A DNA stretch of 64,000 nucleotides from Pecten maximus. Taxonomy: Eukaryota. Where the stretch lies: the NCBI RefSeq assembly GCF_902652985.1, contig NC_047015.1:28706001-28770000 (forward strand). The letters are read 5' to 3'. The position numbers were made by a program, and so were the translations under genes. The notes beneath the pieces are model-generated. The model was not told the DNA's origin. It did no database searches and worked only from the letters and a program-made list of their open reading frames with translations. Below, in pieces: positions 34,601 to 59,181 of this stretch. The stretch's first letter is position 1; each line of letters opens with the position of its first letter.

Positions 34601-37600
34601 TGCTGTAAGGTCCTCCAGGAGTGCTGTCAAAGGAAATGCGGCAATCTTGGCTTTCAGGAAGTGAAAATTGCAGAGGCACTTTTCCTTGACTAGGTTTGAT
34701 GATATCATTTCTTTCGCATTATTTATGTAGTAAGGAAGACAGGAAAGCATTCTCATGTTCTTGCTCACCATAGCCTGTGGTGTGATTTGTCGGTCAGCAT
34801 CTGCAATGCTTTTTTTCCTCCATTGAAGCTGAATGCTACGCTTGACTGAATGGTACATGAAGATTTCGGAGAAGTTTCTGTGGAGTTTCTGGCCATCTTT
34901 TCCCTGTGTGTACAATGTACGTCCAACCGCCGTGAATTGTCTATGGTACCAATTCAATGTATACTTGCCGTGAGAACGCCTTTCTACAAGGTATTCTTTG
35001 AGATCGTAGCGGAGACGAGCCCAAAGGACTGGCGGTATGCGAACAATACCTTCTACGGGTGGGTCATGGTAATGGTATATGTCGTTGAGAGCTTCATCAT
35101 CACAAGAGAGGACGTCTTCCATCTCCGTTTCCGAGGCACCGTTCATTGCAATAGTGATGTAACCAAGAGCATGATTAGTGAAAACCTTTCCAAACTTAGT
35201 TTCCATGTCTTGAAATAAATGTGAGATAGCACTTTGGACGGTGTCAGCCAGTACATGTTCCTGTTCAGGTGTATAAGACTTCCACTTGACCGCCTCGTCT
35301 AATAGCAACTTCAGATAGAGTGGACCTGGCCTCTTAGTGAAGTGGGACAGAAGGTACTTTAGCTGAATGTCATTCAAAGTTCGCTTCCTCCGACTTAGAT
35401 ATTTACTGACTATTTCCTTGCCTGTTTTTAACGAGAGTTCAGGAACAGCGATGTAACTCTGGTCGCTCGGGAGTATGTCTCTCAGTGTGTCCAGGATACC
35501 ATGTTCTTCTGGTAATGTGGACACAATAAGTTTCACATTCGATGGCAATGCAGTGGGTAACCATGCCAACGAATATGCATTATGGTCGTCTGTCAACTGG
35601 TCCAAAGAATCAAGAAGGATTACGATTGGATCTTTGATGGCACTTGCCGCCCGCCTCAGGAATCTTGGTAAATATTCCATCAAATTTTTCATTGTCTTAT
35701 ACGTCGCGGGATCCATGATGAAATTAGCGATGTCAGCGAGTTGTGCACACACACCAAACAAAACATTAAAGATGTTGGTGCTCAAAGGGCTTGTGCCGAG
35801 GAAGCGGATGACTGCAACATGCTTCTTCTTCAACCAGGATGACAGATTTTTCATGATCATAGCCATGATGGATGTCTTTCCTGCCCCTGAGGGAGCATGT
35901 AGAACAAGGGGCTTGCGTGATGTGTCAGTGAGGATGTATGACTTTACACTATCAAGAACATCAGCCTGTCCACAGAACGTTTCACACTTGGTGTTACAGA
36001 ACTGGAGATGGTGAATCAGTTCTGCGTAATCTGTGTACCATTCAGACCAGCGGATATTCGGTAGGTAGTCTGACATTCCGTCCTCTATCAGCACTTTCAT
36101 GTCCGACAAAAAGTCATTACAGAAACACTCGATGTACTTTGCGTGGTATTTATTCGAGTTTGGGTCTATACCTCCAGGTATCCATGGGGTTCCATATTCA
36201 CGTCGGTTTAAGCCTTTCAGTTTCTTCTTTACTTTATTGAAAAGTTCGTTCTGTAGACTCTCTATCTCAGTGTCAACTTCAAGCTGCAAAGATAAAAATA
36301 TTTTGTGAACTAATCTGCGAGAGAAGTACCCATCAAGTAAGAAATGAGTTGGTCCTATACACACGGTATACATTTCTATCGTACATTAGTAGGTAGACTA
36401 AGTAAGCTAAACCTCAGACAAAGGTTTGATTTCTATGTTTTTGACATACCGTACCTATTAAGTGTATTTGAATACTTAGAAGTATTCAAATATGAGAATG
36501 TTCATAGTTTTAACGTTTAACAGAACCCTAGTAGTTAGATAATTACTGGTAATCAAAGATCTGAATATAGCAAAGACATTTGAGCAAAGTAAAGTAGAAC
36601 TAGCTACTCTGACCTAAACATGGAGTAAAAGTACGACAGGTAACACTTCCGATACTTTCATAATATATTTACCAATTACTTAATTCCTTAAAGAAGACAG
36701 CTGATAATGCTTCTATAAAGGGACAATAATGAAAACAAAACCTTAATTCAAAGTGAACACATGACCCTTGAAAGGGAATAAGAACACTTCATTGATCACA
36801 CCCATCATCTAAGTGAAATCCCAGTGATTTCACTTAACTCAAAATTTAGGTAGCGACAAGAAAACTATGATACAAACTAATGAGCATATAACAGCTGATG
36901 ATGTGTTGCCCATAACTTTCATCAAACTGCATAATCCGAAACACTTTCAGCAAAATCTTCTTCTAGCAAACATTATATTTGGATCTTTGCTTTGAAAATT
37001 GAATATTTACATACAAAAGGTGGAAAGTATGTAAGTTATATATCCCTGCGGGTAGGAATAAAAATACTAATGGTAGTACACACTACATGTTCCCTGCAGA
37101 ATGTGACTTGCTTCCATTCCTAGTATTAAATCCTCAACACACACAAACCTTGCCATTATTGTCTTTGATCTCAATGTATCTTTTGACATCCTTGTCAGAC
37201 AAAGATTCATTGTTGAGCCCAGTTAAGGTTCGGGAGTAAACCACAGTGTGGGCAACTGGATCTTTGGCATCTAGTAAGCCTTTCTTTATCTCTGTCTCTG
37301 TCACTGAAATAAATACCAACATAAATGTCTTAATTATTGATTGCAGAATACATTGTGTCTTGCTTATTTTTATTATTTTATTTTAAGAAGTACAGAATTG
37401 CAATTTAATTCTTTTCAATGAATGTCAGGATTCAATTAGTGTTTTAACTCCACTTGTCTCGGAAGATCAAACTGATATTGGCCATTCATTACTTGTTCAA
37501 ATCATTAAAATTGCTGGCTTTATCTACCTTTTACAACAACTTGGTATTTATTAATTGATAGTTTATATTTTGGAAGGTTTATGGAATTCAAAGGAAAAAA

Positions 37601-40600
37601 TGTTAATGATAAGAAGCAAAATGGCAAGATGATACTGTAATTCAAACTCAGGCAAATACATGAAAACAAATTGAGCAATGAACTAATAATATATATTTTT
37701 ATTTTTGTTGGTGAAATAAACACTGCTATTGTGGAAATAAAACAATGATACTGATAATAGCTATGAGGCAAGAATTTCACCTTACCTGACTGGAAGTACT
37801 CATGGAGGGCACAGGAGGACATTTTGCCTGCATCAGCAGCAGCTTTGGCAGCTTGTCTGAGGATTAACTGTAATTGTCTGAATGTTTGGTGCCAACTTTC
37901 CGTGTCTTTGGCCCGCTTCTCATCACATCCCGGTGAGTAGTCACCAAAAAATGTAAACTTTGACCTGATATGCTGTAATGATAATGTGAACTTTGACCTG
38001 ATATGCTGTAATGATAATGTGAACTTTGACCTGATATGCTGTAATGATAATGTGAACTTTGACCTGATATGCTGTAATGATAATGTGAACTTTGATCTGA
38101 TATGCCGTAATGATCATGTAAACTTTTAACCATACCTATTAAATACATCTAAAAGCACTATCTAAGCACAGTAATACCCCCTAAAATTCAAAGCAAGTGT
38201 AACATAAATCAGATATGTCCCATTTCATCGATAGTGGTTTTAGTGCAAATCTTCAGTGTATGATGTTCAAACTGTAGGAGAAGTTGTCAGACATTATTCA
38301 GTCTGCAATCATAAAATAATTTACTCCCATAAAAATGGCAGGGGCATGAATATACACACCTGTAGGATATACTGTGGGGGTTGGCTATTGTCGTCCTTCT
38401 TGAACCAGGTATGTAGCAGCTTTGTATGTTCAGGATTGGTCGTGTAGCTGGTAAGTAGTGTGAAGTCCTCCGACGATATCTCAGTAGGGATGGGACGGAA
38501 GCCGTATCTGGAGCCTTTTATAAGCTGGAAGGAATCCATTTTGATTTATAACAGGTAAGTTACAATTAAAAAAAAATACACTATACATTGTTTTACACAG
38601 TATCTCCAATGGAATATCATTATTAAATGCTATAAACAAAAGAGCTCTAAGTATAGATCCCTGAGGAACTGTGTGTGAAAATGTAAGTTTGTTTTGGCAC
38701 ATTTTTCCTCCAGGTGTAAATATTTTTTGTTTAGTTTAATACATGATCAAGACTATTTTTATCTATGAAAACTACACGGAACTATCAATAATTTTCAATA
38801 TGAGGTATTGATTTCCCACCACAAAGTTAGGTCCCAGGGAGATTTTCTGACAGTTTTCCACCTCCAGTAAGCAAATCTTCTCCACAGTGTGATCATTCTG
38901 ACTGTCGTCTGTCACACCCCACCTCATGTCCACCATCTGGAAGTCAAGGTCATGTTCCGCACAGAAGTCTCGCAGTTTTGGTGTTGCCTCCCGAACAATA
39001 GCATTTCGCTCTGCCCGCATGTCTGACAAACACAGAAAAGTGAATTTAGTTCAGAATATGTTGTATCAATGACATCGATGATCCATCATGTGGAGAAATA
39101 CTGGAGAAAATACAGTGTAACCGACTAAAACCTATTTCTGAGAATGTATACATGTATATAAATATCCATTCTAGAACTGAATTTAATAGTAATTACTATT
39201 CAAACACACTGGAAAGTCAATACTCTTTAAAATAAATTTTAATTGGAACATTTGTAGATTTTATTCAAATTCGTAGTAGTCTCCATTTGAATGTGACAGA
39301 CTTGACAGGTATGTGTTCTTTTCTTAAGAGATTCTTTTCATCTCTTTTCTCTCAAAGGTATGGCCATCTGAACCATATTTACATCACTTAAGATACAAGT
39401 CGATAAGAAAGCAGCATGATTGAAAATAACCAGAGAATGTCGAGCTGATAAAGATTCGGACGATAGATCTGGGAATGTTTGGGATGTTGTCAAGTTTTCC
39501 CTCTAGCATCCTTTCAAATTGTTGCTCAGCCTTTTTGTCAAAACCTTCCTTCACTGTCAACAGTAAAAAGAAATATTACCACAGATTCTGTTTGTATACT
39601 AAGATAACTCTAATTGCAAAACCTTTAAGTGAAATGAAAGTGAGAACACTGTAATCTTCACCACAAAACAAACTTTCTCAGGTCTCTAATGTTGTGATAA
39701 ATGATCCAACAATGTTTGAGGATTTCAAGGCAAGTGACAGAAACATGATTAAGTTTTAAAAGCAAAGATATTTACATCGTGTTCAAAACAATTTTTATCA
39801 CACCACCAATCTCTATAAAAAGTATTAAGAAATAAAAGCAACCTACCTATATTACTACTGTTTACTTCTGTCTTTGGTACAGTCCTGTTAAAGTAATTAT
39901 AGTATTATTGCATCCACAACTTATATATCATTAATTGGCTTACATCATGAAAATGATCACATGGTACCAACCAGTGACAGAACATGTAAACAGTCAAATA
40001 AAGAAATTATAATATACATGTAATAGGACAACAATCATATTCTTCTCTAGCTTGTATGCCATATTCTCATTGCTTTATGTATAAACAAACCTGGAGGTAT
40101 CTCCTAGGTAACCCGGAGATATTTTACCTGGGGCATACAGTATTGCTCTTTAAATGTATCTGAAAGATATCTCCAAGGTAACACAGAGGTATTCTGGGAC
40201 GTACACAGCATTGCTCTATAGACAAACCTGGAGATGTGTACTAGGTAACACAGAGGTATTCTGGGACGTACACAGTATTGCTCTATAGACAAACCTGGAG
40301 ATATCTCCTAGGTAACAGAGGTATTCTGGGACATACACAGCAATGCTCTATAGACAAACCTGGAGACATCTCCAAGGTAACACAGAGGTATTCTGGGACG
40401 TACACAGCATTGCTCTATAGACACACCTGGAGATGTCTCCTAGGTAACACAGAGGTATTCTGGGACGTACACAGTATTGCTCTATAGACAAACCTGGAGA
40501 TGTCTCCTAGGTAACACAGAGGAATTATTTTCAGACATACACAGTATTGCTCTATGGACATACCTTGACTTGTTCTGCACTGGTTTCTTTGATGCTTGAT

Positions 40601-42064
40601 TGGCAGGTTTTGGCTTTGAAGCAACATGTTGAGTTTTCCCCTAAGAAGAAATATTTACCAATTTCTAACAGCATTCAACAAGATGTAGCTGGTAGTTCAT
40701 CATTTAACAAAATACACCATATGGCATATGGGTCCAATCATTGCCCATGTAAATTAAATTGTTCCTTTATCCAGAGCCTAGATGATTTATGCTTGGGGTC
40801 TGTGAAATCTAGTTTAGTTCAAATCAAGAGATTTTGTGACACCCTCCTAGATAGTGGTTTGATAAATATACATGTATATAAATAATATTGGTATGTCATA
40901 TGTTTTCACTCTAACGCATGTAAAATGTGTAAGGTTATAAGCAGATCTCCATAGCATGGGTGGTTGGGTACACATTGGTAATGTATTCACCTTTCTACTA
41001 GGTGACTGCATGGGTTCAATTGACCAATCAGAGGTCAAAGGTTATGGGTAACCTATAAGCATTTCATTTGTTTCACAATTGTTGTAGTTTATCTCCATAA
41101 CTCTTCCTAAATCACAGGTAAAAGATGTAAGATAGACTGTCTGCCTATCTCTAGAATATCAAAATTATAAATAAAGCTTTATGAGATTGAGGATATGTCT
41201 GATTCAAAGATCAAACTAGGGGGAGATAATCTAGAATCAAATGGAGCAATTCTGACAAAAAAAACTGAAGGGCAGGTGGCCAGTCTAGATGTTATATACA
41301 TTTAGCTCTTGATTAAATCACAGGTGTAAGATGTAACATAACTCTTAATGAAATCGCAGGTATTATATATAAACTGAGCCACAGTTGTATGTGAAGAAGC
41401 TAATTTCCTTAGCATAATTTAACATCTGGTTTATCTGTGAAAGGTTTCTGCAAGATCAAAATAAGTTTTTGGGTTTGCGCGAACATGTTGGATTTGTCAA
41501 TTACTTATGGAAGCCTGATGGTGGTGTGACATAAAAAAAAGTGACCTAAAATGGTTAGTTTATATAAACAGCTTTGTACTCCTGCTAAACAAAGAATTAA
41601 CCAAGGTTTTAAATACAACATGTACCTTCAATAAATCAAAGGAGGAATCATGTCTTTTCACTGCCACCCTTTTGGAATCTGAAAAGAAGAAAACAACAAA
41701 AGTGTTAAATGTTCAATATAGGATAAATATCTATAAATATCTACAGAGAATAATCCAACTACAGGTACAAAATGTATAGTTTATGTTGTGTGAAAAAATT
41801 GTCTGTATTTGTTTAATGCTGGTATTTAAGAAACAGAAATATTGTCACATGTTTTTAAATAGTCAAGAATAATGTTTCTGCTTTTACACTGAACATGCAC
41901 TGGAAGATTTTTTTATAGGCTAGAGACTTTATAGCTATTCTTAGAGGAACATAATATTGTTGAACTGTGTAAAATTAGATAAAAAGGTGTATCAAATCTA
42001 TACTGATCATTAATAAATAAAAAAACTACTTACCTGGTGGGATGTTTTTGGTTTTGGAAGCCAT
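31680..42064 (-). CDS. NACHT and WD40 repeat protein (NWD1/NWD2-like), paralog B, intact, 1745 aa
   Basis: Coding exons 42064-42034, 41678-41626, 40640-40564, 39884-39847, 39553-39431, 39022-38820, 38524-38360, 37972-37786, 37303-37149, 36283-32303, 31904-31680 (TAA). They sum to 5238 nt with consistent phases. Starts MASKTKNIPP and has the same DUF4062-like, NACHT and WD40 motifs as A. Confidence 0.9.
37951..38126. repeat. 33-bp tandem repeat (5 copies) spanning an NWD-B splice acceptor
   Basis: Unit ATGTGAACTTTGACCTGATATGCTGTAATGATA; the first copy overlaps the exon start at 37972. Confidence 0.9.
38580..38702 (-). mobile_element. LINE reverse transcriptase fragment (L2/CR1 group)
   Basis: Translates TVPQGSILRALLFIAFNNDIP, matching the RT motif GVPQGSILGPLLFxxxINDLP. 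Confidence 0.6.
40070..40565. repeat. 67-bp tandem repeat (~7 copies) abutting an NWD-B splice donor
   Basis: Unit CTATAGACAAACCTGGAGATGTCTCCTAGGTAACACAGAGGTATTCTGGGACGTACACAGTATTGCT; the terminal unit contains the real donor at 40563. Confidence 0.9.
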
Positions 42065-42859
42065 CTGTTCTGTTTTATATATCTGTAATTAAAGCTGAAA
42101 AAAAAATATAAAAAAGAAATAGTAATAGAAAGATATTTTAATTTTTGTTTTTTTTATTAAAATTCTATGTTGTTTGGCTTTTAATTTTCCAGTAATTCCA
42201 AAAGGACATTGCTTCATGCATCTTATTAAAGTTCTTTGTATTGATGCTGGAGCATCATGTTAAATTCTTTAAAATGAAGTGATTTGAAAGCAGTCCCCTT
42301 AAAATGTGAGCCCATATAAGCTTTTTTTTATCTACAGTGTGACAGACAATATGAACATAGACATCAACAGTCATTTAAATATAATTAAAAAAACGAAGAT
42401 ATTTCTAAATGATGAATCATGATGTTGAGCTGGTTTAAGGAGTAACCTCAAAATTAAAATTGGCCTTTTATATATAAACATTTTTTTTTGAAAATGAACA
42501 TCAAAAACGTACCTGTGCACTATACACAAGTGTGCACTCTACGCGGATATTTACGATAGTAACTAGAGCAAAGGTAATTATTTCACAAATATGGCAATAA
42601 AAGAAAATAAAAGGCCAACACACTTACTTAAAAACATTTTCTTTCAATTTCAACAGTTCAATTCTTTTATCAAAATAAGATACATGCAATTCTGAGACAT
42701 GTCATCAATCACCTTTTTAAGATTTTGCATGATTCTTAGGCAGACTGCTACTTAAATACACACATCGCATGTATTGTGTATAGAATACAAGATTAGTGTA
42801 TCACCATTTACGGACATCATCCAGTTTAATGTTGTGATAAGGTAACAAAAACTATATGT

Positions 42860-44815
42860 AGTTTACAGTATATATAATGTACTATACAATGTATACATGT
42901 GTTGTTTATACATGTAATTAACAGTATTAATGTACTATACAATGTATAAATGTGTTGTTTCTACATGTAATTAACAGTATTAATGTACTATACAATGTAT
43001 ATAGGTGATGTTTCTACATGTAATTAACAGTATATATAATGTTCTATACAATGTATAAATGTGTTGTTTCTACATGTAACTAACAGTACATATATAATGT
43101 ACTATACAATGTATACATGTGTTGTTTATACATGTAACTAACAGTACATATATAATGTACTGTACAATGTATACATGTGTTGTTTATACATGTAACTAAC
43201 AGTACATATATAATGTACTGTACAATGTATACATGTGTTGTTTCTACATGTAATTAACAGTATTAATGTACTATACAATGTATATAGGTGATGTTTCTAC
43301 ATGTAATTAACAGCATATATAATGTACTATACAATGTATAAATGTGTTGTTTATACATGTAACTAACAGTACATATATAATGTACTGTACAATGTATACA
43401 TGTGTTGTTTATACATGTAACTAACAGTACATATATAATGTACTGTACAATGTATAAATGTGTTGTTTATACATGTAACTAACAGTACATATATAATGTA
43501 CTATACAATGTATAAATGTGTTGTTTTTACATGTAACTAACAGTACATATATAATGTACTATACAATGTATACATGTGTTGTTTTTACATGTAACTAACA
43601 GTACATATATAATGTACTGAACAATGTATAAATGTGTTGTTTTTACATGTAACTAACAGTACATATATAATGTACTGAACAATGTATACATGTGTTGTTT
43701 TTACATGTAACTAACAGTACATATATAATGTACTGAACAATGTATAAATGTGTTGTTTTTACATGTAACTAACAGTACATATATAATGTACTGAACAATG
43801 TATAAATGTGTTGTTTTTACATGTAACTAACAGTATTAATGTACTATACAATGTATATAGGTGATGTTTCTACATGTAATTAACAGCATACATAATGTAC
43901 TGTACAATGTATATAGGTGTTGTTTATACATGTAACTAACAGTACATATATAATGTACTGAACAATGTATACATGTGTTGTTTATACATGTAACTAACAG
44001 TACATATATAATGTACTGAACAATGTATACATGTGTTGTTTATACATGTAACTAACAGTACATATATAATGTACTGAACAATGTATACATGTGTTGTTTC
44101 TACATGTAATTAACAGTATTAATGTACTATACAATGTATATAGGTGATGTTTCTACATGTAATTAACAGCATACATAATGTACTGTACAATGTATATAGG
44201 TGATGTTTCTACATGTAATTAACAGCATACATAATGTACTATACAATGTATATAGGTGATGTTTCTACATGTAATTAACAGTATATATAATGTACTATAC
44301 AATGTATAAATGTGTTGTTTTTACATGTAATTAACAGTACATATATAATGTACTGTACAATGTAGGTATGTGTTGTTTTTACATGTAATTTACAGTACAT
44401 ATACAATGAACTGTACAATGTATATACATGTAGCTGTTGTTTCTACATGTAATTAACAGTACATATACAATGTACTGTACAATGTATGTATGCGTTGTTT
44501 CTACAGATGTACATGTAATACGCAGTATACATTGTATATAATTTACTATACAATGTATACATGTGTTGTTTCTACATGCAATTAACAGTACTTGTACATA
44601 TATAATGTACATGTACTATACAATGTATACATGTGTTGTTTCTACATGTAATTAACAGTACTTGTACATATATAATGTACTATACAATGTATATAGGTGA
44701 TGTTTCTACATGTAATTAACAGTATATATAATGTACTGTACAATGAATAAATGTGTTCTTTCTACGTGTATTTTGCAATATATACATATAATGTACTATA
44801 CAATGTACATGTATA
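42860..44815. repeat. ~53-58 bp AT-rich minisatellite (~34 copies)
   Basis: Unit AACAGTACATATATAATGTACTRTACAATGTATACATGTGTTGTTTATACATGTAACT, rich in short palindromes. Confidence 0.9.
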
Positions 44816-45131
44816 CTGGTGCTGTTTATACACGTGTTCAGGTCTACATTACATTGTAATACTTAATGTAATGTTGTTTTCCATTAAACATTTTATGCCG
44901 AAAAAAAATATATTAGCAGTTTGCCCAGAAGGGTGGACTATTTTGTAGTAAATATTCTCACCACTAAAATAGATTCCATATGCACATGTATTATTTTCCA
45001 ACCAATGTCAACATGAGCCTGTAAATGTACATGCGATTCTTTTTTATGCAGAAATATATAATATAGATACAACGTTTAAGAGTGAGACATTACTGTCACT
45101 TAGTCATCTAAAGACCGGCAACGAAACTTAC

Positions 45132-45212
45132 TTTCAGCCGACAAGTTTCAGCTTATAACACCAAGCAGACATGTTTGTTTACCTGAGTGACAGTGACCAG
45201 GGGAGACAACTA
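45132..45212 (-). promoter_or_regulatory. Putative non-coding first exon / proximal promoter block of NWD-B
   Basis: AAG|GTAAGT donor at 45132/45131; conserved block shared with 24601-24643. Confidence 0.55.
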
Positions 45213-45404
45213 TTGTAAAACAAGTGCAATCAATGATTGCGATAGCTCACCGACAGCAGCAATGTCATTTTGAAATTCCATTTAATTCGATTCATTCTAT
45301 TGACTTTAAGCTTTACAGCTCATCAGTACATATAACATATATACAATACATTAAATTGGCGGTCACAGCAATATAGCAGTTTAATTATTGTACGTCACAT
45401 AATA

Positions 45405-45840
45405 TCGCTCCTAGACCTCTAATGAATGTACTTACAAGCTTTCCAAAACTTACCTCCAAAATCTTTAAAGAGGGTTTTTGTGCCAAAAAAATTAAGTCCA
45501 CTAAATGGTAAAATGCAAAAAAAAAAACAACAAAAAAATAAATAAAAAAAAAATTCTGCATGATTAACAGAAAAAAGTTTTGAAAGTCCACAAAATGGTA
45601 AAATGCGAAAAAAAATCACAATTTTGTTCTGCATGATTTTGCCATAACATCACTCCTAGACCTCTAATGAATGTATAAACAAAATTAGAAGGGTGTGAGG
45701 TGTGTACTTTTGGACTTAGAAGTTTTCCAAAAAGTGATCCCAAAAACTTTAAAGTGGGGTGGGACGCCGACGCCGACGCGGGCACCGACGACCTGGGTAC
45801 AGTATTAGCTCACGGTTACTCGTAACCGTTGAGCTAATGA
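45405..45840 (+). mobile_element. Helentron-type element end
   Basis: Repeated CTCCTAGACCTCTAATGAATGTA, (GACGCC)n and terminal hairpin ATTAGCTCACGGTTAC-TC-GTAACCGTTGAGCTAAT. Confidence 0.5.
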
Positions 45841-47439
45841 AACATTATCGGTCCCCCTCAAAGTGAAACCAGGGAAATATATAATATTCTGAACCCTTGT
45901 CAGTATTAGTAAGAATTTCAACGTGAACAGAGCTAAAATGCGATTCTCCGGTATAACTCACCTATATTTTAAATGACTACATTATTTACGTAAAAAAAGC
46001 TTGCATAAATAACTCATTCAATGACTAATGACTTTGAGATAGATACGATGAAACTAGAATATTTATTCCTATTTGAAAACTCTGACAGGGAAGTGAATTG
46101 TAAACCTGTTGATGCTGAGCGTTATATGACTACGAAAAAAAGTCCTTACGTGTTTCAGAAATATATGTTACCAACAAACGAATAAAAAGTTGAAAAATCA
46201 TGTTAGAATCTACTCTTTCTTTGTATGATGTATAAACTGTGTTTTAACACAGGTCATAGACCTGTATTATTGTCCATGGTGATATGCACTGTCTGTAAGT
46301 GTCATAACCTACATTTGACATGTAGTTCCCGATAGATATCATTATTTGGTTATTGTTAAAACTAGGCCATAACTGATAACATTTGAACGATATCTTTAAC
46401 TGGGTCACTTTTCATATGGAAGCGAATTGAAATGAATCGTCCACAGGGATCGCCGTCTTGTCCTTATCGAAGGTGGAGGGAGGGGGCTCAATGTATATTC
46501 CTGGTCACGGGACCACGTTATTACAAAGCAAGACAAAATTATAAACTATTGCAACGCCGATCAGACAGTGATTAGTCCCAACTGACAATTTATAGGACAA
46601 GCGGAATCCTCCACAACGGATTTACATTTAGCACGTTGTTTTCCATGATTAAAAAATTATTTGGTCATTTGGCAATATTTATAACAAAACAAAACAAAAT
46701 TTTGCATCAAATCTTATGATAATCACATTAACATACTTATTCATGAAAAATGATGTGCATGTACGGGTTTACTTAATGCAATGGCAGCTACGCGCCTGTG
46801 ACAAAGCGAGAATTGACCTGACTTATAGTTTAATATTTACAATCCTGGTCACGACACCGCATTATTAGTCAAGAAAACTGTTGCTATGCAGTCTACTTCT
46901 TCAACTATCAACTTTGTTAATTCCTTCTCTTTACAAAAAATACAGTGTATAGAGAGAACATATTTACAACATTCAACAATTACAATATATGGAGGACAAA
47001 TCATACAACTTTTTTAAACAGTACTTTGATATTTACATACATCATGCCTTAAAGTTTTGATATTGGTACATTAGCTGTGAAAATTTAACAATATTAGGTA
47101 AAGTATAACAGTATTTTTCAATGCATAATTTTCGTTCAACAGTCAAAATGGGCATTTCAATAAATAAAGAAAATCATCACGGATGTCATTGGTATCACAG
47201 TGTGGACAAATTTTATTTGATAATTTACATTATGCTATCTTCAGGTTTCTACAATGAATATATGGTTACTTGTTCTAAATTTACAGAGCAACATTCTTTC
47301 GTTGTCATTAAATATACCAAAATATTTTTCAAAATTGCATCCTTTTTTATATATTCTATAACAAACTGGCATCGAAGAGTTAAAATATCACTTTCTTATT
47401 TTTGTAAAAATTGATGTACAATGTACAATGTTTGCTTTA

Positions 47440-47680
47440 CTATTGAGGGCTCAAATTGCTTTGAAACTGTGAATTCCACATATACATTAAACCACTTTCG
47501 TTTGAAATGTTTTGTATAAAACTTGAGTATGGGACTGCTCTATTTTCATTAATAAATAAACTGTACATGATATAATATAATGATGATGTTTTTATCTCAA
47601 GCAGAAGTAAGCTTGTTCCCAGTTCACCATTAACCATGTAGTTCGGTGTACTTTTTTTCAAACCTCATAGTAGTTTACAA
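47440..47680 (-). mobile_element. LINE ORF2 C-terminal fragment
   Basis: KKSTPNYMVNGELG resembles the STPxxxxYGELG motif downstream of RT in non-LTR elements. Confidence 0.45.
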
Positions 47681-47751
47681 ACTTTTAAATAAAAACGTTC
47701 TTATTTTTGATTGTCTGGAAACAGTGGCTAGTCCCGACTGACCATTTACAT

Positions 47752-47950
47752 AACACTTTATCACTAGCCCTCCACCTCTGGGTTGGGAGTTCGAAACCTA
47801 CGTGGGGCAGTTGCCAGGTACTGACCGTAGGCCGGTGTTTTTTCTCCGGGTACTCCGGCTTTCCTCCACCTCCAAAACCTGGCACGTCCTGAAATGACCC
47901 TGACTGTTAATAGGACGTTAAACAAAAACCAACCAAACAAAACAATCCAA
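47752..47950 (+). mobile_element. Same SINE family as 14482-14712, 5'-truncated
   Basis: B box GAGTTCGAAAC, core CCGGGTACTCCGGCTTTCCTCCACC, (CAAAC)n tail. Confidence 0.85.
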
Positions 47951-48239
47951 ACGTTATGGCAACATTCAAGGACACCGTTAAACAAATAAAGTGTTATTTA
48001 AAAAAAAAGGAAATCGCAGATTCAATCACTAAAACGATGTTCTAGAAACCACGAGATCAAACATGTGCTCCCGACAGGCGGCTCTCAGTCAGATCTTATA
48101 TCAGTCTCCTGTCATAGACTGAACTTTTTTTTTTCGATCACCGCCGACTGAGGAAGAAGTGCTCACAGAGACAAAATCTGGTCACAGTGGTAACTATATA
48201 CTTATATATCCTATAATGACACATAATTCACCAGAAAGC

Positions 48240-48400
48240 CCGCTTTTTATCATGATACTTATACCAGGCTCCGGAGTGACAGATGGTGTCTTTTCATGAG
48301 ATTAAATTAAAGGCATTTTTTTTTCTTTCAAAGTCATCCCAAGACAAAGCGTCATCAATATAACTAGTATATATAAATTCCTCCCTGTAAACAACCCGCC
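48240..48400 (-). mobile_element. Possible Penelope-like RT relic
   Basis: FIYTSYIDDALS followed (after a break) by KDT..HDKKR, resembling RYIDDVLS..KDTT..YDKR; very degenerate. Confidence 0.3.
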
Positions 48401-48793
48401 TTGAAGTGGTACAATGTGAGTTACAGTGATAATGATTGCTGTCTGATGATATAGTATAGATATTATATTGTCTACACATAATTAATTGTCAATTAATAAA
48501 ATTAGTTGTAGAGGGAGACAACTCGTAAACCGCACTAAGCACATGTGTATAGAATAAAACTAACAAAAAAGTCACACATACGATACCTTTAAAAGATTAG
48601 AATATAATAGTACATGGATAACGTGCGCTGTGTGGACCTACTGATTAGAGGTCATTAATTAAACCAACCCTTACCGACGCTGCCAAACCTGGTTCGGGAT
48701 TTTACTGGCCACGGTCATCGTAATATGTGGTTTGTTTATGCTTAAATCAACAATATTTTGTACATTGTGGGTTTTTATAAGTGACCCTGAACG

Positions 48794-51700
48794 ATGTCTG
48801 CGACTAGTGTACCCGACAAGACTAAGAGGATAGGACGATGGTATTTCGGCGGAATAGCTAGTGCCATGGCCGCGTGCTGCACTCATCCGGCTGATCTTAT
48901 CAAGGTATAATACGTGTAATCTAGTTATTTAAAACTTGAATTCATAGAGTTAATAAACGCATGTAATCAATATACGGAATTTCCATTCGGCACTTGCACC
49001 AATTATTTAAGACATTTGAAGGCCAATATTTTCCTTCGGTAGCATTGTTATACATGGAACAAATTCCAGGGTAAAGCTTGTAAAAACAGTTAAGTGATAG
49101 ATATCTCCGCCTTTGTCCATCACCCTACATTGTTTATGAATTAGCGTATGAATTGTATTTATTTCGGATGTGATATACCCTGTACATACCCCAACAAAAA
49201 CAGTGTATAGTTATGTTAATTTGCTGTATAATCAAAACTGGTGTAAAGTCAGCTAGTACAATATAACTACTGAGCTGTGCCGATTATAGGTGGGGGATTT
49301 GGCACGACTGGCTATAACTTCCGCGACCTTTACCTTTGTTAGGGGAATTGCTTATACCAAATAAGTTTCAACCATACAACTGGCATGACAATTATCTAAG
49401 CTGGGAATTTGGCTGATTCAACTGATTTACCTGAAAGGATTTTTGCCACAGAAACTTCAATGGGTGACTGTCAAGGTTACAATAAAGAGACTGTCTATGG
49501 TCAATAAGAATCTGTATTTAGACAGATACCCAAATATAGCCTGATGTAGACCACAACACAATCTAGCATCTTTGTCAGATATTTAGATGTATATTAGGTC
49601 ATTATGGGTGTAGGTGGGTGTGGATGGGGGTCAAATAACAAAATGAGTTTAAAAACGTTCGCATTCCTTCACAAAAGTTTGTATTCACATTAGTGTTTGA
49701 AAATCGTATAGAAGTCGTCAGAATTACACGGAATACATAATGCAGGTAATATGTAGAATTAATCCAATAATCAAAGTAGGGAATTAATGTTGGTGTTCAA
49801 TGAAAAGTTGAGTAGCAGACATAAAAAGTAGAGTCATACATAGCTATAGGAGGGTGATTTTGTCAAGTTTTCATTTCAATTTAGTTATTATCAAACATAA
49901 CGCACAGAGTATAGTGTGTTTAGTATTAAACTAAAGGCATTGCTTATAAAATGTATATCGTATATTTTGATGCATGCTTTGAAAAATAATGTGTTCAGTC
50001 TTTTATACTTTTAATTTATAGACTTTCATTTTACAATAACTGCAGAAAATGTTATATCAACTTATATTAATCATGCCTGTTAGTTCGAAGGGAAGTGCGC
50101 GAGGGGCCTTACTGTCGGAGGAAACCGGAGTAAACACCTGGCCAATTTTGTATACTATCGAATTTTCAACTAAATTTGATTCTCTTTACCAAAAATGTGT
50201 ACAGAAACTATTACAAAATTCAACAAATTCAGTGTATCGATCAGGAAGACAAAGTATAAGACTTTTTTAAATGTATGATTAAGATATCAGTAGTATTCAT
50301 TAGCTCTAAAAAGTTATCATATATGGTAATATTTGTTCGTGTATAATAATATCTGATATAATATATCTATTTAATATATCTAAAAATGACTTTCTTTCAA
50401 TAGCCAAAAATGGACATGGAAACAAAAAAGAAATTCGTTACCTATTTCATGAATATACTGTAACAGTATGGACACATTCTATTTTGATGTTCCACATTAT
50501 TCCATCTGCAAGTTTCAAGTCTTTTATGATTATTTGTTCTGAACATACACAAAAGTATTCTTTAGTTATCATTTAAAATGTCAAAACATTTTTCAAGGTT
50601 TTCAATAATTTTTCATAAATTCTATTACACACAGATTTCGAAGAATTACAATAAGTTTTACAAAAATATGATCGTACAAAATCTGATGTACAGTTAGTTT
50701 TAGGATCGTGTAATAAGATTTTCCTGTATCTGTCAATCTCAAATAAACACCATTCAACATTCATTAAACTATTTTATAGAAAGATTTAATATGGGACTAC
50801 TTTATTGTCGTTTATAAAGACAAGAGATAACATATTATCCGTCACAAATTTAGTTTGTTTTTCTCTTGATAGCAACATTCTTGACCAGTAACTAATCATT
50901 CTAGCTTTTATTTCTATTAAAAGTGGGCTTGTGCCTAGTTCCCAATAAACTAGTATTCATTGCCATCGGTACGCACGCATATCATACACCTAAACAGCGA
51001 ACAGCTAATTTCCATTAATATGTAGCATTTGACCAGCTACTTTGGTACAAAATGTATCTGATTATTGGTGTTTGTTGATATCTAATTATTCTGTGCGATA
51101 TTCACATCTCTCTGTTCTGTTTCAGCAACTTTGCATTACAGCGTCTCGTCCTTTTCCCCTTTTCTATATTATAATTTCTATGCAGAGTTATTAAGATAAA
51201 TGATTAATTCGTGTTGTATTTTAACAGGTTCATCTTCAAACCCAGCAACTGGAGAAGGTCAAGGTCACGAGTTTAATAGGCCGTATCATCAAGAATGACG
51301 GGATTCTGGGGATATATAACGGTCTATCAGCTTCTATTTGCAGACAGGTAAAGACCCCTGTAGTAAACAAATAACAACAGCAACTGCATCGCTTTGAAAA
51401 CAGTATCCCCGATAGTTTAGGGGTTACGTCCACATTCGCTCTTTGCACCCCTGGACTTTATGTTGGTAAGTGCTCAATCACCATCAGTGGATAAAACAAA
51501 ATATAAGTTTGGTCCTTTGATTTGTATTATTGAACTTCATAGTATTGAGCTTGGTAATCGCTCCTGCTCCTCCTCCTCCGACTCCGACTCCGACAGCATT
51601 TCCATGCAGATTATAAAAGCAGGAGACTAAAATATACACTGTTATGTATCAGGGCTTTTATTTGTGGGGTACCTTTCGTACATACAGATGGAAGTTGTTA

Positions 51701-54700
51701 TCTTTTATCAATGTTTTATCTGTATGATTCCTAACTCCCCAACATATACCACCCAGCCCGTTTATCCCTTCAGTTGACCTAGTCCACCAACCGGTTTTAT
51801 CCCTCCAGTTGACCTACTCCACCACCCGGTTTTATCCCTTCAGTTGACCTACTCCACCACCCGGTTTTATCCCTCCAGTTGACCTACTCCACCACCCGGT
51901 TTTATCCCTCCAGTTGACCTACTCCACCACCCGGTTTTATCCCTCAATGTGACCTACTCCACCATCCGGTTTTATCCCTTCAGTTGACCTACTCCACCAC
52001 CCGGTTTTATCCCTCAATGTGACCTACTCCATCACCCGGTTTTATCCCTTCAGTTGACCTACTCCACCACCCGGTTTTATCCCTCCAGTTGACCTACTCC
52101 ATCACCCGGTTTTATCCCTTCAGTTGACCTACTCCATCACCCGGTTTTATCCCTCCAGTTGACCTACTCCATCACCCGGTTTTATCCCTCCAGTTGACCT
52201 ACTCCACCACCCGGTTTTATCCCTCAAGGTGACCTACTCCACCACCCGGTTTTATCCCTCCAGTTGACCTACTCCACCACCCGGTTTTATCCCTCCAGTT
52301 GACCTACTCCATCATCCGGTTTTATCCCTTCAGTTGACCTACTCCACCACCCGGTTTTCTCCCTTCAGTTGACCTACTCCACCACCCGGTTTTATCCCTC
52401 CAGTTGACCTACTCCACCACCCGGTTTTATCCCTCCAGTTGACCTACTCCACCACCCGGTTTTATCCCTCAATGTGACCTACTCCACCATCCGGTTTTAT
52501 CCCTTCAGTTGACCTACTCCACCACCCGGTTTTATCCCTCAATGTGACCTACTCCATCACCCGGTTTTATCCCTTCAGTTGACCTACTCCACCACCCGGT
52601 TTTATCCCTCCAGTTGACCTACTCCATCACCCGGTTTTATCCCTTCAGTTGACCTACTCCATCACCCGGTTTTATCCCTCCAGTTGACCTACTCCATCAC
52701 CCGGTTTTATCCCTCCAGTTGACCTACTCCACCACCCGGTTTTATCCCTCAAGGTGACCTACTCCACCACCCGGTTTTATCCCTCCAGTTGACCTACTCC
52801 ACCACCCGGTTTTATCCCTCCAGTTGACCTACTCCATCATCCGGTTTTATCCCTTCAGTTGACCTACTCCACCACCCGGTTTTCTCCCTTCAGTTGACCT
52901 ACTCCACCACCCGGTTTGCCATTTACGAGACGATCAAGAAACATCTGACTAAGGATGGAAGCGTGATGCCTTTCTATCAGAAGGTTGGCACGGCCGTGGT
53001 GTCAGGCGCCTTGGGAGGTTTCGTGGGAACTCCAGCCGACCTTATCAATGTCAGGTACTCCTCTGTTTCCATTGTCAACTTCTAGTGAAATAATGTTTTA
53101 AGTGGTACCGCTAAAGTCTTACCGTCATAATAAAAGTCATAAAGAGTTCTACAAAAGTCAGATAAGTGAAGAGTTCAGTTATTTTAATATAGATTTGTGA
53201 TAAATAAGTTCAGTGGTAACTAATTACAGCATATGAATTTAGTGGTAAATAACTTTAGCATATGGAATTAGTGGTAAAAAACTACGGCATATGAATTAAG
53301 TGGTGAAAAACTTCAGCATGTGGAATTTGTGGTAAATAATTACAGCATATAAATTAAGTGGTGGATAACTTCAGCATATGGAATTAGTGGTAAAAAATTA
53401 CAGCATATAATTTAAGTGGTGGATAACTTAAGAACATGGAATTAGTGGTAAATAATTACAGCATATAAATTAAGTGGTGGAAAACTTAAGAACATGGAAT
53501 TAGTGGTAAATAATTACAGCATATGAATTAAGTGGTGGATAACTTCAGAACATGGAATTAGTGCTAAATATTTATAGCATATGAATTTAGTGGTGGATAA
53601 CTTCAGAACATGGAATTAGTGGTAAATAATTACAGCATATGAATTAAGTGGTGGATAACTTCAGCATATGAATTTAGTGGTGAATAACTTCAGCATGTGG
53701 AATTAGTGGTAAAAAAATTACAGAATGTGAATTTAGTGGTAAATATTTCAAAATATGAATTTTGTGGTAAATAATTACAGTAGACTGAATAAAATTAAGA
53801 AAACAAAATATTTTTATTTTTTCATTCGCATTGTGATAATAAGGTGTATTATGAAGAATGTCGTTATGTTTGCTTCAGGATGCAAAACGACGTAAAGCTA
53901 CCAGTGGACCAGCGCAGAAAGTGAGTACAGTAATGATGATTGAATATAAGTAAAAGCAGAGTAACACGAAATATAAACATTCTGAATACTTTCGCTGATG
54001 TCAAACTTTAATTCAAATGTCATAGCATTACATCAATCATTGACCAAAATATATCTACTGACAAGTCACCACATCAATGATTCTCATGTGTATATCTACT
54101 GACAAGTCACTAGATCATTGATACTTGTCTATAACCTCCGTCATATTTTACCAAAATGTATCTACCGACAAGGCACCATATCATTGACTCTCGTCTATAA
54201 CCTCCGTCATATTTTACCAAAATGTATCTACCGACAAGGCGCCATATCATTGACTCTCGTCTATAACCTCCGTCATATTTTACCAAAATGTATCTACCGA
54301 CAAGGCACCATATCATTGACTCTCGTCTATAACCTCCGTCATATTTTACCAAAATATATCTACCAACAAGGCACCATATCATTGACTCTCGTCAGAAACC
54401 TCCATCATATTTTACCAAAATATATCTACCGACAAGGCACCATATCATTGACTCTCGTGTGTAACCTCCGTCATATTTTACCAAAATATATCTACCGACA
54501 AGGCACCATATCATTGACTCTCGTCTGTAACCTCCATCATATTTTACCAAAATATATCTTCCGACAAGGCACCATATCATTGACTCTCGTCTGTAACCTT
54601 CGTCATATTTTACCAAAATATATCTACCGACAAGTCACCATATCATTGACTCTCGTCTGTAACCTCCGTCATATTTTACCAAAATGTATCTACCGACAAG

Positions 54701-57700
54701 GCACCATATCATTGACTCTCGTCTATAACCTCCGTCATATTTTACCAAATTTAAAGACATTACTGTCGCATTTTCTGATGGTTAAAATTTTCGCGGTTTG
54801 AACTACAAGGATTTTATTTCCCTGATACTATTCTCAAAGGTTTACACGTATTAGTTGAGGTTTACATGTATTAGTTAAGGTTTACACGTATTAGTTGAGG
54901 TTTACATGTATTAGTTAAGGTTTACACGTATAAGTTTTCTTTGTAACGTTATCTGCCGTTCTCTTTCAATCAAAGGTAAATATATCTGAAGAACAAGACA
55001 TTAATCAGCGCACATATTTAGTGTAATACCCAACACAAACTCGATAACTAAAGCATTTTTCTGTGTAATTGTAGCTATAAGAATGCCTTTCATGGTTTCT
55101 ATCGCGTGTTCCGGGAGGAGGGGATTGGAAGGATGTTCTCCGGCGCCACCATGGCCAGTTCCAGAGCGATCCTGGTCACTGTCGGACAAGTGTGTATCAA
55201 TCCTCCATTTATATTTGTAGTTATTTTAAATTCTACGTTGTGTTTGAAGAATTATGAATGTTAAACTCGGAAAGAACTGGTTTATTCGAATCAAGGAAAT
55301 TTAAAAACGAAACGGCATTTGTTTGTTAATATGTTTTATTCCTATTTTTATCGATTATGATTTAGAATTTCCTGTTATTATGTATTTACTTGTAGTTTGG
55401 TTTACTTGTAGTACACAAATGTTATAGTATTTGGTATTAGTAGTACACTTCCTGATACAGACGGGTATATACAAGGTATTAATTTCTTTGTATAGCTGGC
55501 ATGTTATGACCAGATAAAACAGACACTTATGAACACCGGCTACTTCAAAGACAATGTGTTCACACATGTAACCAGCAGTGCGGTAGCGGTAAGTACCCAT
55601 TCTACAACCTCCTCCTTATCACCATTCACCTGGCGTAGGATACGTAATGATTATTTATGAGTTTATGTAAATACAAAACATGTTGAAGTGCATCTATATT
55701 ATAGAATACATGACGACGGTGTTGAGACAAATGTATACGATATAACATATATATAGGACACATGGCGATAGTGTTTAGAAATATACATATTTAGGTCATT
55801 ATAAAGAATGTCGAGAGATTATATAACGTACAGGTGACGATGGGTGTTGGGTGAGGACCAGTGATAAGACTTGCAAAATGTTGAATTATGACAGCAAATG
55901 AATTCGGTCTCTCCACTCAGCGATTTCTCATAGTTGTCCCTTGTCAGCAAAAACTTTGGAATCTGCCAAAGGCGTGTGTCAACATTCGAATGTCTTCTAT
56001 TACATAGAGGAGCGATACTCCTCAAAACATACCATGATTTCAACCGATTTTTGCATTCAAAATGTTGAACTGGTTATATTAATATAAATGAGTATTTGCG
56101 GCAATGTGATCCTGAAGAGTAAGCGGTTCCCCAGCCACATATGGCACCCGCCATGGTCTTCAGTCCCAAATAAGTGTTATGGCAACATCCTTGCTAAAAC
56201 GTCTTGAATCTAAGAATAATTTATCTATATGACTTAACAAACATACATTAATGTTTTATCAAAATGGCCTAATAAACATATCATGATTATTTATCTCTAT
56301 GACTAAATAAACATACCATTATAATTTATATATATATGTCTTCTTTAGTATATCATAATAACCTATCTGTATGACTTGATAAACATATGATGATATATTA
56401 TATACCAGGGGACCATAGCCACTGTGATTTGTCATCCTGTGGACGTGATGAAAACTAGGATGATGAACGCCCCGCCAGGACATTACACTGTAAGTACTGA
56501 ATCGGTATACATCTTAGTCTAGTGCTAATGTTCAGCTTGTATCTCAATTTATTCTATGTGTCAGTTTATACTACCTGTGAGTTTATACTACGTGTGAGTT
56601 TATACTACGTGTCAGTTTATACTACGTGTCAGTTTATACTATGTGTCATCAGCTTATACTATATGTGAGTTTATACTTTTTGCCAGTCTATTCTATGTGT
56701 CATACTATGTGTCTATGCTGTTTATCGGTTTTATTAGATTGTGAATCACATCTGCTCTCATTGTAACCACTCGAGAATGTAGATTGTGAATCACATCTGC
56801 TCTCATTGTAACCACTCGAGAATGTAGATTGTGAATCACATACACTCTCATCACCGTAACTCCTCGGGGATGTGATGACTAGATGTAGATTTTGAATCAC
56901 ATCTGCTCTCATTGAAACCACTCGAGGATGTATATTATGAATCACATCTGCTCTCATTGTAACCACTCGAGGATGTATATTATGAATCACATCTGCTCTC
57001 ATTGTAACCACTCGAGGATGTATATTGTAGATACAATGATACATGCACATTGAAGTTTTATCAAAGTTTTATGTGATTAACGTACAACAGTGATACGTTT
57101 ATATTACAGTGATATGTTTATATTACAGTGATATGTTTATATTACAGTGATACGTTTATATTACAGTGATACGTTTATATTACAAGTATTACTTTCCGGG
57201 AATTATTTTTGCAGGTCCAGATTTTGTGCCAGCATTACTTGCCGACAATTATTGTGTATGGTCAGATTTTGTGCCATGATTACATTCCAAGAATAAAAAG
57301 TACCTGATGTAAATTACGTTTTAAATCATTTTCAGGGTTTATTTGCATGTGCAAAGGATATTGCGAAAAATGGACCTCAAGGCTTTTTTAAGGTAAGATT
57401 ATTTAGCTATTGACGAATCAAAATCAGTTGAATATTTATTTTCCCATGGTTTTGTTTTAACTTTTTGTACCAAATGTTAGGACGTAAATAATATAACGTA
57501 ATGATTGCATTCAGGGGGTTTATTATCACAGTGTGTATTTCTCGGTCTTGGAGACGAATATCAAGTTTGAACATCTTAAAATCAAAAAATCAATTTATTT
57601 TTTATTACTATTGATAGTCATGTTAATCAAAACAGAATATAATATACTTATGATGGATTGTGTATTTTGTGAGTAATTATCATTAGTAAGAGTTGATAAA

Positions 57701-58094
57701 GTTATTTTTTGTTTGAAACTGTTTAAAACCAATATTCATCTCCCAAATGAGTATTTGTATACTCTTATATACATGTTAGCTAAATCAAAACTACTGTCGG
57801 AATTATTACTGCAGTACTGATTTTATTTTTAAATTTATTGGTTGACTCGTATTCGTAAGAATATCGTTACTATATCGTTGATATTCATGCAGTATTAAGC
57901 TCAACATCTGACAAGCTGTAGTGTTCTATATTTTAGTTTTGGAAAGGGAGAACTAACATTCCATGTGTGATTATCATTTCTTTTGTCTTCGACAGGGATT
58001 CATTCCAGCCTTCGTGCGTTATGGACCGCATACAGTCTTCATATTCATTTTCCTGGAACAGATACGACAGAATTTCGGAGATGATCCGGAGTAG
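48794..58094 (+). CDS. SLC25A10: Mitochondrial dicarboxylate carrier, 292 aa
   Basis: Exons 48794-48904, 51228-51347, 52894-53054, 53879-53920, 55075-55189, 55496-55588, 56409-56489, 57336-57392, 57996-58094 = 879 nt, all GT-AG and in phase. Contains RWYFGGIASAMAACCTHPADLIKVHLQTQ, RQLTYSTTRFAIYE, GTPADLINVRMQND and PVDVMKTR (three carrier signature motifs). Confidence 0.95.
51761..52917 (+). repeat. 35-bp tandem repeat (33 copies) made of the SLC25A10 exon-3 acceptor and the first 24 nt of the exon
   Basis: Unit CAG|TTGACCTACTCCACCACCCGGTTTTATCCCTY; the last copy runs into the coding exon at 52894. Confidence 0.95.
53205..53780. repeat. ~29-30 bp degenerate minisatellite
   Basis: Unit AATTAGTGGTAAATAATTACAGCATATG(A), with two alternating variants. 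Confidence 0.85.
54040..54750. repeat. 66-bp minisatellite (~10 copies)
   Basis: Unit TATCTACCGACAAGGCACCATATCATTGACTCTCGTCTATAACCTCCGTCATATTTTACCAAAATR. Confidence 0.9.
54838..54932. repeat. 20-bp tandem repeat (~4.5 copies)
   Basis: GGTTTACAYGTATTAGTTRA. Confidence 0.8.
56558..57185. repeat. Cluster of short arrays (17 bp at 56558-56680, 44-45 bp at 56736-57030, 19 bp at 57088-57185)
   Basis: GTTTATACTACGTGTSA; GAATCACATCTGCTCTCATTGTAACCACTCGAG..; TACAGTGATAYGTTTATAT. Confidence 0.8.
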
Positions 58095-59181
58095 CTAATC
58101 GGACAGGGGTGTCTTCATTCATAGTGTATGGAGTAGCTTCTCCCATCACAACATTGACTCAGTTTCCTAGAAAATCGAGATAATTGAGGTCGTAGCCGTG
58201 ATGTTTCCGTATGCCTCGCTATTTTTATTCTCGTGGTGAGATTAAAATAGATCTAAAACATCAGTAAATATATTTATAAACCATTTATGTAACACTTTAA
58301 ACTACTTTAGTATGTATTTTCCACAATTATCCAAGAACAGGTCACCGAGCGACATTAACGTTGTTCCATGTTTTAAAGTACAAATGTAAAATATCGGTAT
58401 ATTTCGTGCAATCTTGTTTATTAGGGAACTGAACTGCCATTTTAGAAATTGTGATATGTTAAACTGGAACTTGTATTGGGGTGTTAGGAAAATGTGTGTC
58501 ATAGACCAGCAAGAACCGTACTGCATGTGTATGTGTGGTATATGGCCGGGTTAGTTTGGATTTGTTGGCTTTTTTTACCATCAATGTTATTTATATGTTT
58601 CATGTTTTTATCAGTCCATTATTTATTTACATTTCCAGTCCAGCTATCGATGTATTTAGTTATATGTGTTTTAGAAAGTTTCGTTTACCAACAAAACTGT
58701 GATATTTATACTCCGATTGAAGATACAAACGCCTATCTTGTTAATGAATGACGTGCTTTTGTTTTGGGTGCAGTGTATGTTGATTTTTGCCCAGTCGATG
58801 TGTCTACCCTGTGTATATGTTGTAAGGTGTTGACTATCTATTGACTATTATGTTGAATATGTAGTGGATGGTGTGAATCTTTGTGTCAGATTTTATTCGT
58901 TTCGTTCCTGTAAGTGTGTGATAGAGCTATTGAGGACGAGCATGCAGGGATCCCAGTCTTTCACTGACGATTCTGGCCATCGGAATAAGAGAGAGTTCAG
59001 ACAAAACCTTACTATCAGTGATTATAGATATAGGGGAGATCTTGTTGAACCTTGTGATTTAGATATCCCATTTGAAATATTTCCAGTGAATCTCTTCCGG
59101 TCTTATTTTGTTACTTTCTGTTGTTAAGGCGACCAGTTGGCCTTTACTACAGAAATGCTTGTTAACATGTTTGTACTCAAT

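Follow-up and report, generated by a model that had tools for sequence, protein, structure and literature searches.

Minisatellites that straddle exon-intron boundaries are known from cephalochordates and from one human gene. In amphioxus, where they are called mirages, they are reported from Adh3, the globin genes BflGb6 and BflGb9, troponin C and PGBD5 (PMC3087553, citing Canestro et al. 2002 NAR; PMC3902484), and these papers describe them as lying at 5' as well as 3' boundaries, as being spliced normally and as turning over by unequal exchange (PMC3087553; PMC3902484). In human F7 the first unit of a 37-bp variable number tandem repeat of intron 7 lies across the exon 7 donor, and the pseudo-donors that follow are functional but silent, the most upstream site winning (PMC1557585). 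Here we analyse a stretch of 64,000 nucleotides of the scallop Pecten maximus (contig NC_047015.1, positions 28,706,001 to 28,770,000 of the forward strand; hereafter the window) in which three tandem arrays lie on splice junctions: array 1 at an acceptor and array 2 at a donor of an NWD1-like gene, NWD-B, and array 3 at an acceptor of a mitochondrial-carrier gene. These arrays fit the structure already described in amphioxus and in human F7 and are not new in kind. We favour, with a probability of roughly 0.72, the reading that they are mirage-type minisatellites, a tolerated by-product of frequent tandem duplication in short introns, neither targeted to junctions nor regulatory.

The likeness to the amphioxus mirages extends to minisatellite-like units spanning the boundary at acceptors and donors alike, to unit lengths of tens to ~160 bp with AG or GT kept in many units, to an authentic junction formed by the copy joined to the exon, and to turnover by unequal exchange; splicing is reported as normal in amphioxus, and that of the scallop genes is read here from gene models. 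The hosts differ, being Mollusca (Pectinidae and a venerid clam), and so does the density, with three arrays within 15 kb and copy numbers that reach 33 in Pecten and, in a related array of Mizuhopecten, 88; in addition, the same junctions are hit here across genera and paralogues. Our literature searches returned no report of junction-spanning minisatellites in molluscs.

The window contains no N and maps to the 60-Mb record LR736838.1 of assembly GCA_902652985.1. Its large open frame at 32255-36373 (minus strand, 1373 residues) matches at 100% identity the Pecten maximus protein P0001 (NCBI LOC117329570; 1745 aa), an NWD1-like product with DUF4062, NACHT, WHD and WD40 parts, and P0001 mapped back onto the window resolves NWD-B into 11 minus-strand exons between 31683 and 42064. 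Its paralogue NWD-A is situated at ~4975-19878. The carrier gene occupies 48794-58094 on the plus strand as nine stop-free pieces bordered by GT and AG, and its annotated product is 292 aa long in Pecten, Mizuhopecten and Argopecten alike. It was searched exon by exon; three pieces match Pfam Mito_carr, on which the family assignment rests, and UCP1 is the best solved relative. The gene is plausibly SLC25A10 (the mitochondrial dicarboxylate carrier, DIC), a putative orthologue of DIC within SLC25. For comparison we used orthologous or related NWD loci of six other bivalves (L001-L007; L008 is the window's own Pecten locus), and arrays were called with Tandem Repeats Finder (TRF).

Array 3, at the acceptor of carrier exon 3, has the following setting:

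51228-51347, plus strand: carrier exon 2 (ending ..GLSASICRQ), phase 0, donor GTAAAG
51731-51735, plus strand: CTAAC, a motif resembling a branch point, 38 nt ahead of the AG in the most distal unit
51761-52917, plus strand: array 3, called by TRF as 35 bp x33.1 with 93% matches
52894-53054, plus strand: carrier exon 3 (LTYSTTRFAIYET..INV; protein start LTYSTTRF), matching Pfam Mito_carr, its first 24 nt within array 3

Each unit joins the last 11 nt of the intron to the first 24 nt of exon 3, the latter being also the overlap of the array with the exon, and 33 units follow one another in perfect 35-nt register. The intronic flank of the array reads cccgttt and its exonic flank CCCGGTTT, a microhomology. 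Every unit carries TTGAC, which resembles yUnAy, a pyrimidine tract and usually AG, the dinucleotide being kept in 28 of the 32 decoy acceptors; decoy use would lead to a stop after 12 codons, or after 2 from the most distal unit. The exon 2/3 boundary is the same in Mizuhopecten and Argopecten, whose orthologues read ..ICRQ|L(T/S)YSTTRF.., and against UCP1 (8g8w) the end of exon 2 falls opposite residue 88 and the start of exon 3 opposite residue 89, in alignments with weak E-values. The orthologous introns of these two scallops measure 652-695 bp and have single-copy acceptors, and TRF found no tandem repeats anywhere in their carrier genes. Four of the seven variable positions among array 3 units fall within -4 to +1 of the acceptor, a weak hint that selection may act against the decoys.

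Blocks 51844-52368 and 52369-52893 are identical at 525 of 525 positions, which amounts to a higher-order duplication of 15 units and shows that the array grew by multi-unit unequal exchange; as a consequence, unit 15 has the same whole upstream context as the real acceptor. Together with the presence or absence of arrays among species, this block is an indirect sign that array length may be unstable. Perfect identity over 525 bp, which could have arisen either very recently or through duplication in the assembly, is also what could be adduced for the view that the arrays or their copy numbers are products of repeat mis-assembly. We consider this very improbable, given the ordered variants among units, the location of the arrays inside a chromosome-scale contig, and the occurrence of similar arrays in four further bivalve genomes, each assembled independently. 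With regard to splicing, Mizuhopecten has CTAAC ~25 nt before its single-copy acceptor, and the CTAAC at 51731-51735 is probably the ancestral branch point, now ~1.1 kb away from the real acceptor. The latter would therefore have to use a branch point inside array 3, for which the TTGAC that the preceding unit took from the exon is the most plausible candidate.

Array 1 is found at the acceptor of an NWD-B exon:

37787-37972, minus strand: NWD-B exon starting HIRSKFTFFGDYSPG, P0001 residues 231-292 at 100%, its first 23 nt within array 1
37950-38126, minus strand: array 1, called by TRF as 33 bp x5.4 with 96% matches
38360-38533, minus strand: NWD-B exon ending ..PPQYILQ|GTGTGT, its donor single-copy in Pecten

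The annotated acceptor sets the exon start at 37972 and hence the overlap between array and exon at 23 nt (37950-37972), the unit consisting of 10 nt of intron end (..TTACAG) and the first 23 nt of the exon. Three of the four decoy acceptors are intact, with no difference from the real site between -20 and +17, and the fourth has GG instead of AG. After ..PPQYVLQ the orthologues continue with NIRSKFTFF (Argopecten) or NIRSQFKFF (Mizuhopecten), and therefore it is the exon-adjacent acceptor that gives the conserved protein; scallop orthologues read ..PPQY(V/I)LQ|(N/H)IRS(K/Q)F.. across the junction, the start of the NWD-B exon being conserved. Since 33 is a multiple of three and the unit is free of stops, each decoy would add 11 residues in frame. 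At this same junction the acceptor is single-copy in Pecten NWD-A and in the Mizuhopecten and Argopecten orthologues, and the Argopecten intron ends with the same ..ATCATTACAG, which argues that array 1 is young and was built from local sequence. More generally, the intron parts of array 1 and array 3 units match the ancestral intron ends, as read from single-copy orthologous or paralogous junctions, and sequence comparison shows both arrays to be young by their absence from the single-copy orthologous junctions of Mizuhopecten and Argopecten. The 11-nt AAAGTTTACAT occurs in the distal intron flank of array 1, a flank orthologous to the Argopecten intron at 10 of 15 positions, and again in the exon 33 nt downstream; this pre-existing direct repeat bracketing the junction is likely to have been the seed of the array.

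The preservation of decoys, mostly intact in arrays 3 and 1 (28/32 and 3/4), together with a 33-bp unit that is a multiple of three and lacks stop codons, lends some support to a functional role, in which decoys would titrate splicing factors or would send transcripts, in a proportion that depends on copy number, to nonsense-mediated decay (NMD) or to longer proteins, array length thereby setting expression of the immune-type NWD gene and of the carrier. The strong CAG|GTGAGT, GTAAGT or GTAAGA donors of Argopecten and Ylistrum arrays, and the persistence of arrays at one NWD donor across genera and paralogues (see below), point the same way. However, an in-frame, stop-free 33-bp unit has a probability of ~0.2 by chance, arrays 1 and 3 are species-specific, with orthologues that function in their absence, the donor array of the relatives at ..PPQY(V/I)LQ|GT is absent from Pecten, array placement fits chance, P0001 has one isoform on record (a cluster of 1), and decoys are silent in the known analogues (PMC1557585, PMC3087553). 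Such tuning is thus unlikely in our judgement.

Array 2 lies at the donor of another NWD-B exon:

40564-40640, minus strand: NWD-B exon (..KKPVQNKS, ending in phase 2), P0001 residues 29-56, its donor heading array 2
40165-40565, minus strand, with degenerate copies down to 40080: array 2, called by TRF as 67 bp x6.0 with 89% matches

The real donor at 40564|40563 stands at the array edge, where the exon ends ..AACAAGTCAAG|GTATGT (CAAG|GTATGT), and the TRF overlap with the exon is only 2 nt. The last 10 exon bases agree with the end of the unit at 7 positions, and the Mizuhopecten exon agrees with the Pecten unit at 8 of 10. Array 2 is mostly an intron-side amplification that starts at GT, and is a weaker fit to a unit of exon plus intron. 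Its units start donor-like (..CCAG|GT) and provide seven AG|GT decoy sites, five of them CAG|GTTTGT, one GTGTGT and one GTAAAA, as compared with AAG|GTATGT at the real site; according to a reading-frame check, decoy use would result in a frameshift or a stop. The orthologous Mizuhopecten intron holds a related 51-bp x88 array, which starts 17 nt past the donor and in whose units GT is replaced by GC or AC, and Argopecten has no array at this donor. The core motif was located in this Pecten intron and in its Mizuhopecten orthologue, with no further occurrence in the window or in loci L002-L004. Array 2 thus shares ancestry with the 51-bp x88 array and is older and of local origin, most of its decoy donors being weakened. 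A dispersed, transposon-borne satellite had been considered as its origin and was set aside in favour of a local shared array, the motif occurring nowhere else in the sequences searched. RNA structure masking the decoy donors was rejected too: a 201-nt stretch across the real donor and two units gains nothing in folding stability over shuffled sequences (z = -1.0).

The donor arrays invite comparison with F7 intron 7, where the real donor is likewise followed by a series of pseudo-donors and the most upstream site is used, in agreement with the gene models of every bivalve donor array. The pseudo-sites of F7 are identical to the real donor, whereas most array 2 decoys differ from it at +3; the donor arrays of Mizuhopecten, Argopecten and Ylistrum, with decoys identical to the real donor, come nearer to F7. 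The F7 evidence comes from mammalian cells and concerns donor arrays, being silent on acceptor arrays.

An earlier note on this DNA had described three unrelated arrays as amplified exon-intron boundaries, with the exon-edge unit giving the conserved protein in each. TRF recovers all three, their units are mutually unrelated in sequence, and scallop orthologues and annotated products bear out the exon-edge unit in every case; the description as amplified boundaries holds for arrays 1 and 3, with 23 and 24 nt of exon, and is weaker for array 2, with its 2 nt. That note also proposed that splice signals are copied into decoys by a very active local tandem-amplification process. The activity is confirmed, since ~30 arrays make up 26% of the window and the carrier gene, 9.3 kb long in Pecten, contains 11 arrays as opposed to none in the 5.1-5.7 kb orthologues of Argopecten and Mizuhopecten. 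The copying is likewise evident from the AG retained in array 3 and from the three identical decoys of array 1, although nothing shows that it is aimed at splice signals. The tuning of splicing, NMD or protein length by copy number, also suggested in the note, has likewise nothing that shows it.

The question of aim was approached with a null model in which each genic array was collapsed to one unit and a seed of equal length was placed randomly within the gene, only intronic positions or positions spanning a single junction being allowed. Among 19 genic arrays, 2.13 are expected to span a junction and 3 do so (P(>=3) = 0.36), as the earlier note had anticipated in allowing for chance overlap. 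Therefore, this window gives no evidence of targeting: junction enrichment was not found within the 64 kb under this null. The existence of the arrays themselves is far beyond chance and their placement on junctions is not, and it is shown at the same time that junction-spanning arrays are not purged.

Comparison with other bivalves adds recurrence to this picture. The ..PPQY(V/I)LQ|GT donor, single-copy in both Pecten paralogues, is amplified in Mizuhopecten (28 bp x16.6), in Argopecten (71/137 bp; 69 bp x2.3 in the paralogue) and in Ylistrum (29 bp x27.6; x10 in the paralogue), and where the exon overlap of these arrays was mapped it amounts to 16 nt in L001 and 21 nt in L002. In a protein tree the amplified donor appears in both NWD paralogue clades, and unit lengths track the species and not the paralogue; its presence in both clades means that the amplified donor is either ancient, with losses, or repeatedly re-grown. 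Amplification also affects a second donor, ..IF(I/L)SSTFS, which is present as ~9 copies of CTCAG|GTAAGA in Ylistrum and as a 73 bp x4.9 array in the clam Mercenaria, the arrays lying at L003 17146-17714 and 198-395 (Ylistrum) and at L005 10165-10520 (Mercenaria) and their decoys being near-consensus (CAG|GTAAGA, CTG|GTAAGT). In the Ylistrum array the protein is encoded contiguously by the first of the ~9 copies; exonisation, suggested by a tblastn match to the third copy, was rejected on this account. A further intronic array of Ylistrum (L003 17825-18009) consists of ~30-bp units, each with a consensus-like donor ACAG|GTAAGG, and is not obviously derived from an exon edge. One oyster and one mussel NWD gene were inspected, and neither showed junction-spanning arrays.

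This recurrence lends support to the idea that arrays are born preferentially at junctions, either because junction sequence (pyrimidine tracts, or low complexity of the CAG|GTGTGT type) or damage coupled to transcription or splicing makes them hotspots, or because the conserved junction unit re-seeds arrays. By rough hand tallies, which were not computed, ~11 of ~66 genic arrays span a junction over eight bivalve NWD genes and the carrier; few junctions are hit, ..PPQYVLQ|GT in five gene copies and ..IF(I/L)SSTFS|GT in Ylistrum and Mercenaria; and units at the same junction differ in length among species (28, 29 and 69-71 bp), which suggests repeated origin or re-growth. On the other hand, the window taken by itself has no excess, the oyster and mussel genes have no such arrays, and the cross-species cases are not independent, owing to shared ancestry and to possible gene conversion between tandem paralogues. 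We regard a junction bias as unlikely. A more elaborate variant, which strikes us as improbable, would have self-renewing junction arrays, in which one unit (exon end and splice site), held constant by selection, re-seeds or maintains the array in the long term. Through intact decoys, a share of transcripts set by copy number would end in NMD or acquire 11-residue insertions, resulting in heritable, fast-mutating variation in the expression and length of innate-immunity NWD genes; the self-renewal would explain ..PPQYVLQ|GT arrays across both NWD paralogue clades and several scallop genera.

The favoured reading, that of a tolerated by-product, can be laid out as a series of steps. Scallop introns would gain minisatellites at a very high rate, a seed duplication of 30-70 bp arising by replication slippage or by unequal exchange between short direct repeats, and with introns of only a few hundred bases about one seed in ten would straddle a junction by chance. 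A duplication of this kind would keep one whole junction on the exon body, the partial exon copies turning into intron, and unequal exchange of the sort documented in array 3 would then lengthen the array. The gene would go on functioning provided that the spliceosome selects the exon-adjacent copy: at donors this may be the most upstream site, as established by experiment for F7 intron 7, and at acceptors the copy beside the exon body, presumably through exon definition. Occasional use of a decoy would produce premature stops cleared by NMD in the 35-bp and 67-bp arrays and 11-residue in-frame insertions in the 33-bp array, and the arrays would behave as neutral to mildly harmful passengers rather than as regulators. 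The annotated models all splice at the site next to the exon; P0001, the orthologues, the UCP1 alignment and the 292-aa carrier products agree with an authentic junction formed by the end unit, the one attached to the body of the exon; and in every donor array seen in other bivalves the functional site is again the exon-adjacent copy, by gene models and homology. A mild cost of the decoys may have left signs in the T at +3 of array 2 (GTTTGT versus GTATGT at the real site), in the GC or AC of Mizuhopecten and in the variation at the acceptor core of array 3.

Several points weigh against this reading. The choice of the exon-adjacent site is deduced from Gnomon models and homology, and the chance model is limited to 19 arrays in a single 64-kb window. 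Acceptor arrays are more difficult to account for, as unit 15 of array 3 would be separable from the real acceptor only by its downstream exon context, and first-come co-transcriptional splicing would favour distal decoys in arrays of this type. Furthermore, a purely random model would lead one to expect less persistence or recurrence at one site than is seen in the ..PPQYVLQ|GT arrays, which occur in both paralogue clades and in several genera.

It had also been proposed in the earlier note that arrays might seed new introns or micro-exons. The model of Rogers, in which an intron is gained by tandem duplication across AG|GT (discussed in PMC3087553 and PMC2812944), resembles our case in the duplication of splice signals and in the possibility in principle of a new intron or exon. 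In contrast to that model, no intron or exon has been gained here, intron positions and exon ends being the same in Pecten, Mizuhopecten and Argopecten, and the proposal is not borne out.

Other features of the window deserve mention. Most of one NWD-A intron is occupied by a 29-bp x93 array (10177-12865), with a GC skew of -0.70 over 10001-12000, and the plus strand is C-rich in several other arrays of the window. The big minus-strand exon of NWD-A matches its relatives in two frames that overlap near 7923-7947 (region ~7887-7947), where the NCBI Pecten protein P0032 ends at 772 aa; a frameshift, pseudogenisation or faulty assembly could each account for it. The 6.7-kb spacer between the divergent NWD-B and carrier genes contains a 2-kb AT-rich array (42852-44807; 58-bp x34, with a higher-order period of 283 bp), and is where the promoters of both genes would be expected to lie. 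In carrier intron 4, a 66-bp x10 array (54103-54798, plus strand) forms an open frame of 232 codons, which is a product of the repeat and might be annotated as a gene by mistake. The end of the last carrier intron together with the whole last coding exon to the stop codon (57744-58097) is duplicated 2.5 kb downstream at 60298-60631, with 90% identity over 354 bp, the second copy being an orphan terminal exon. A nearby stop-free frame (61465-62100, plus strand, 212 residues) was considered as a reverse-transcriptase-like cause of this duplication and was dropped for want of a Pfam match.

With our findings, the known range of junction-spanning minisatellites, until now cephalochordates and one human gene, comes to include bivalve molluscs, with recurrence at the same junctions in several genera. 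For annotation, arrays of this kind matter because they give rise to wrongly placed exon ends and to spurious repeat peptides. These loci are also natural experiments on splice-site choice, array 3 offering 32 near-identical acceptors of which one has 525 bp of identical upstream context; together with the strong donor series of other scallops, they make the positional rules of 3' and 5' splice-site selection testable outside mammals. If the arrays are merely tolerated, they would give a figure for the robustness of splicing to decoy sites.

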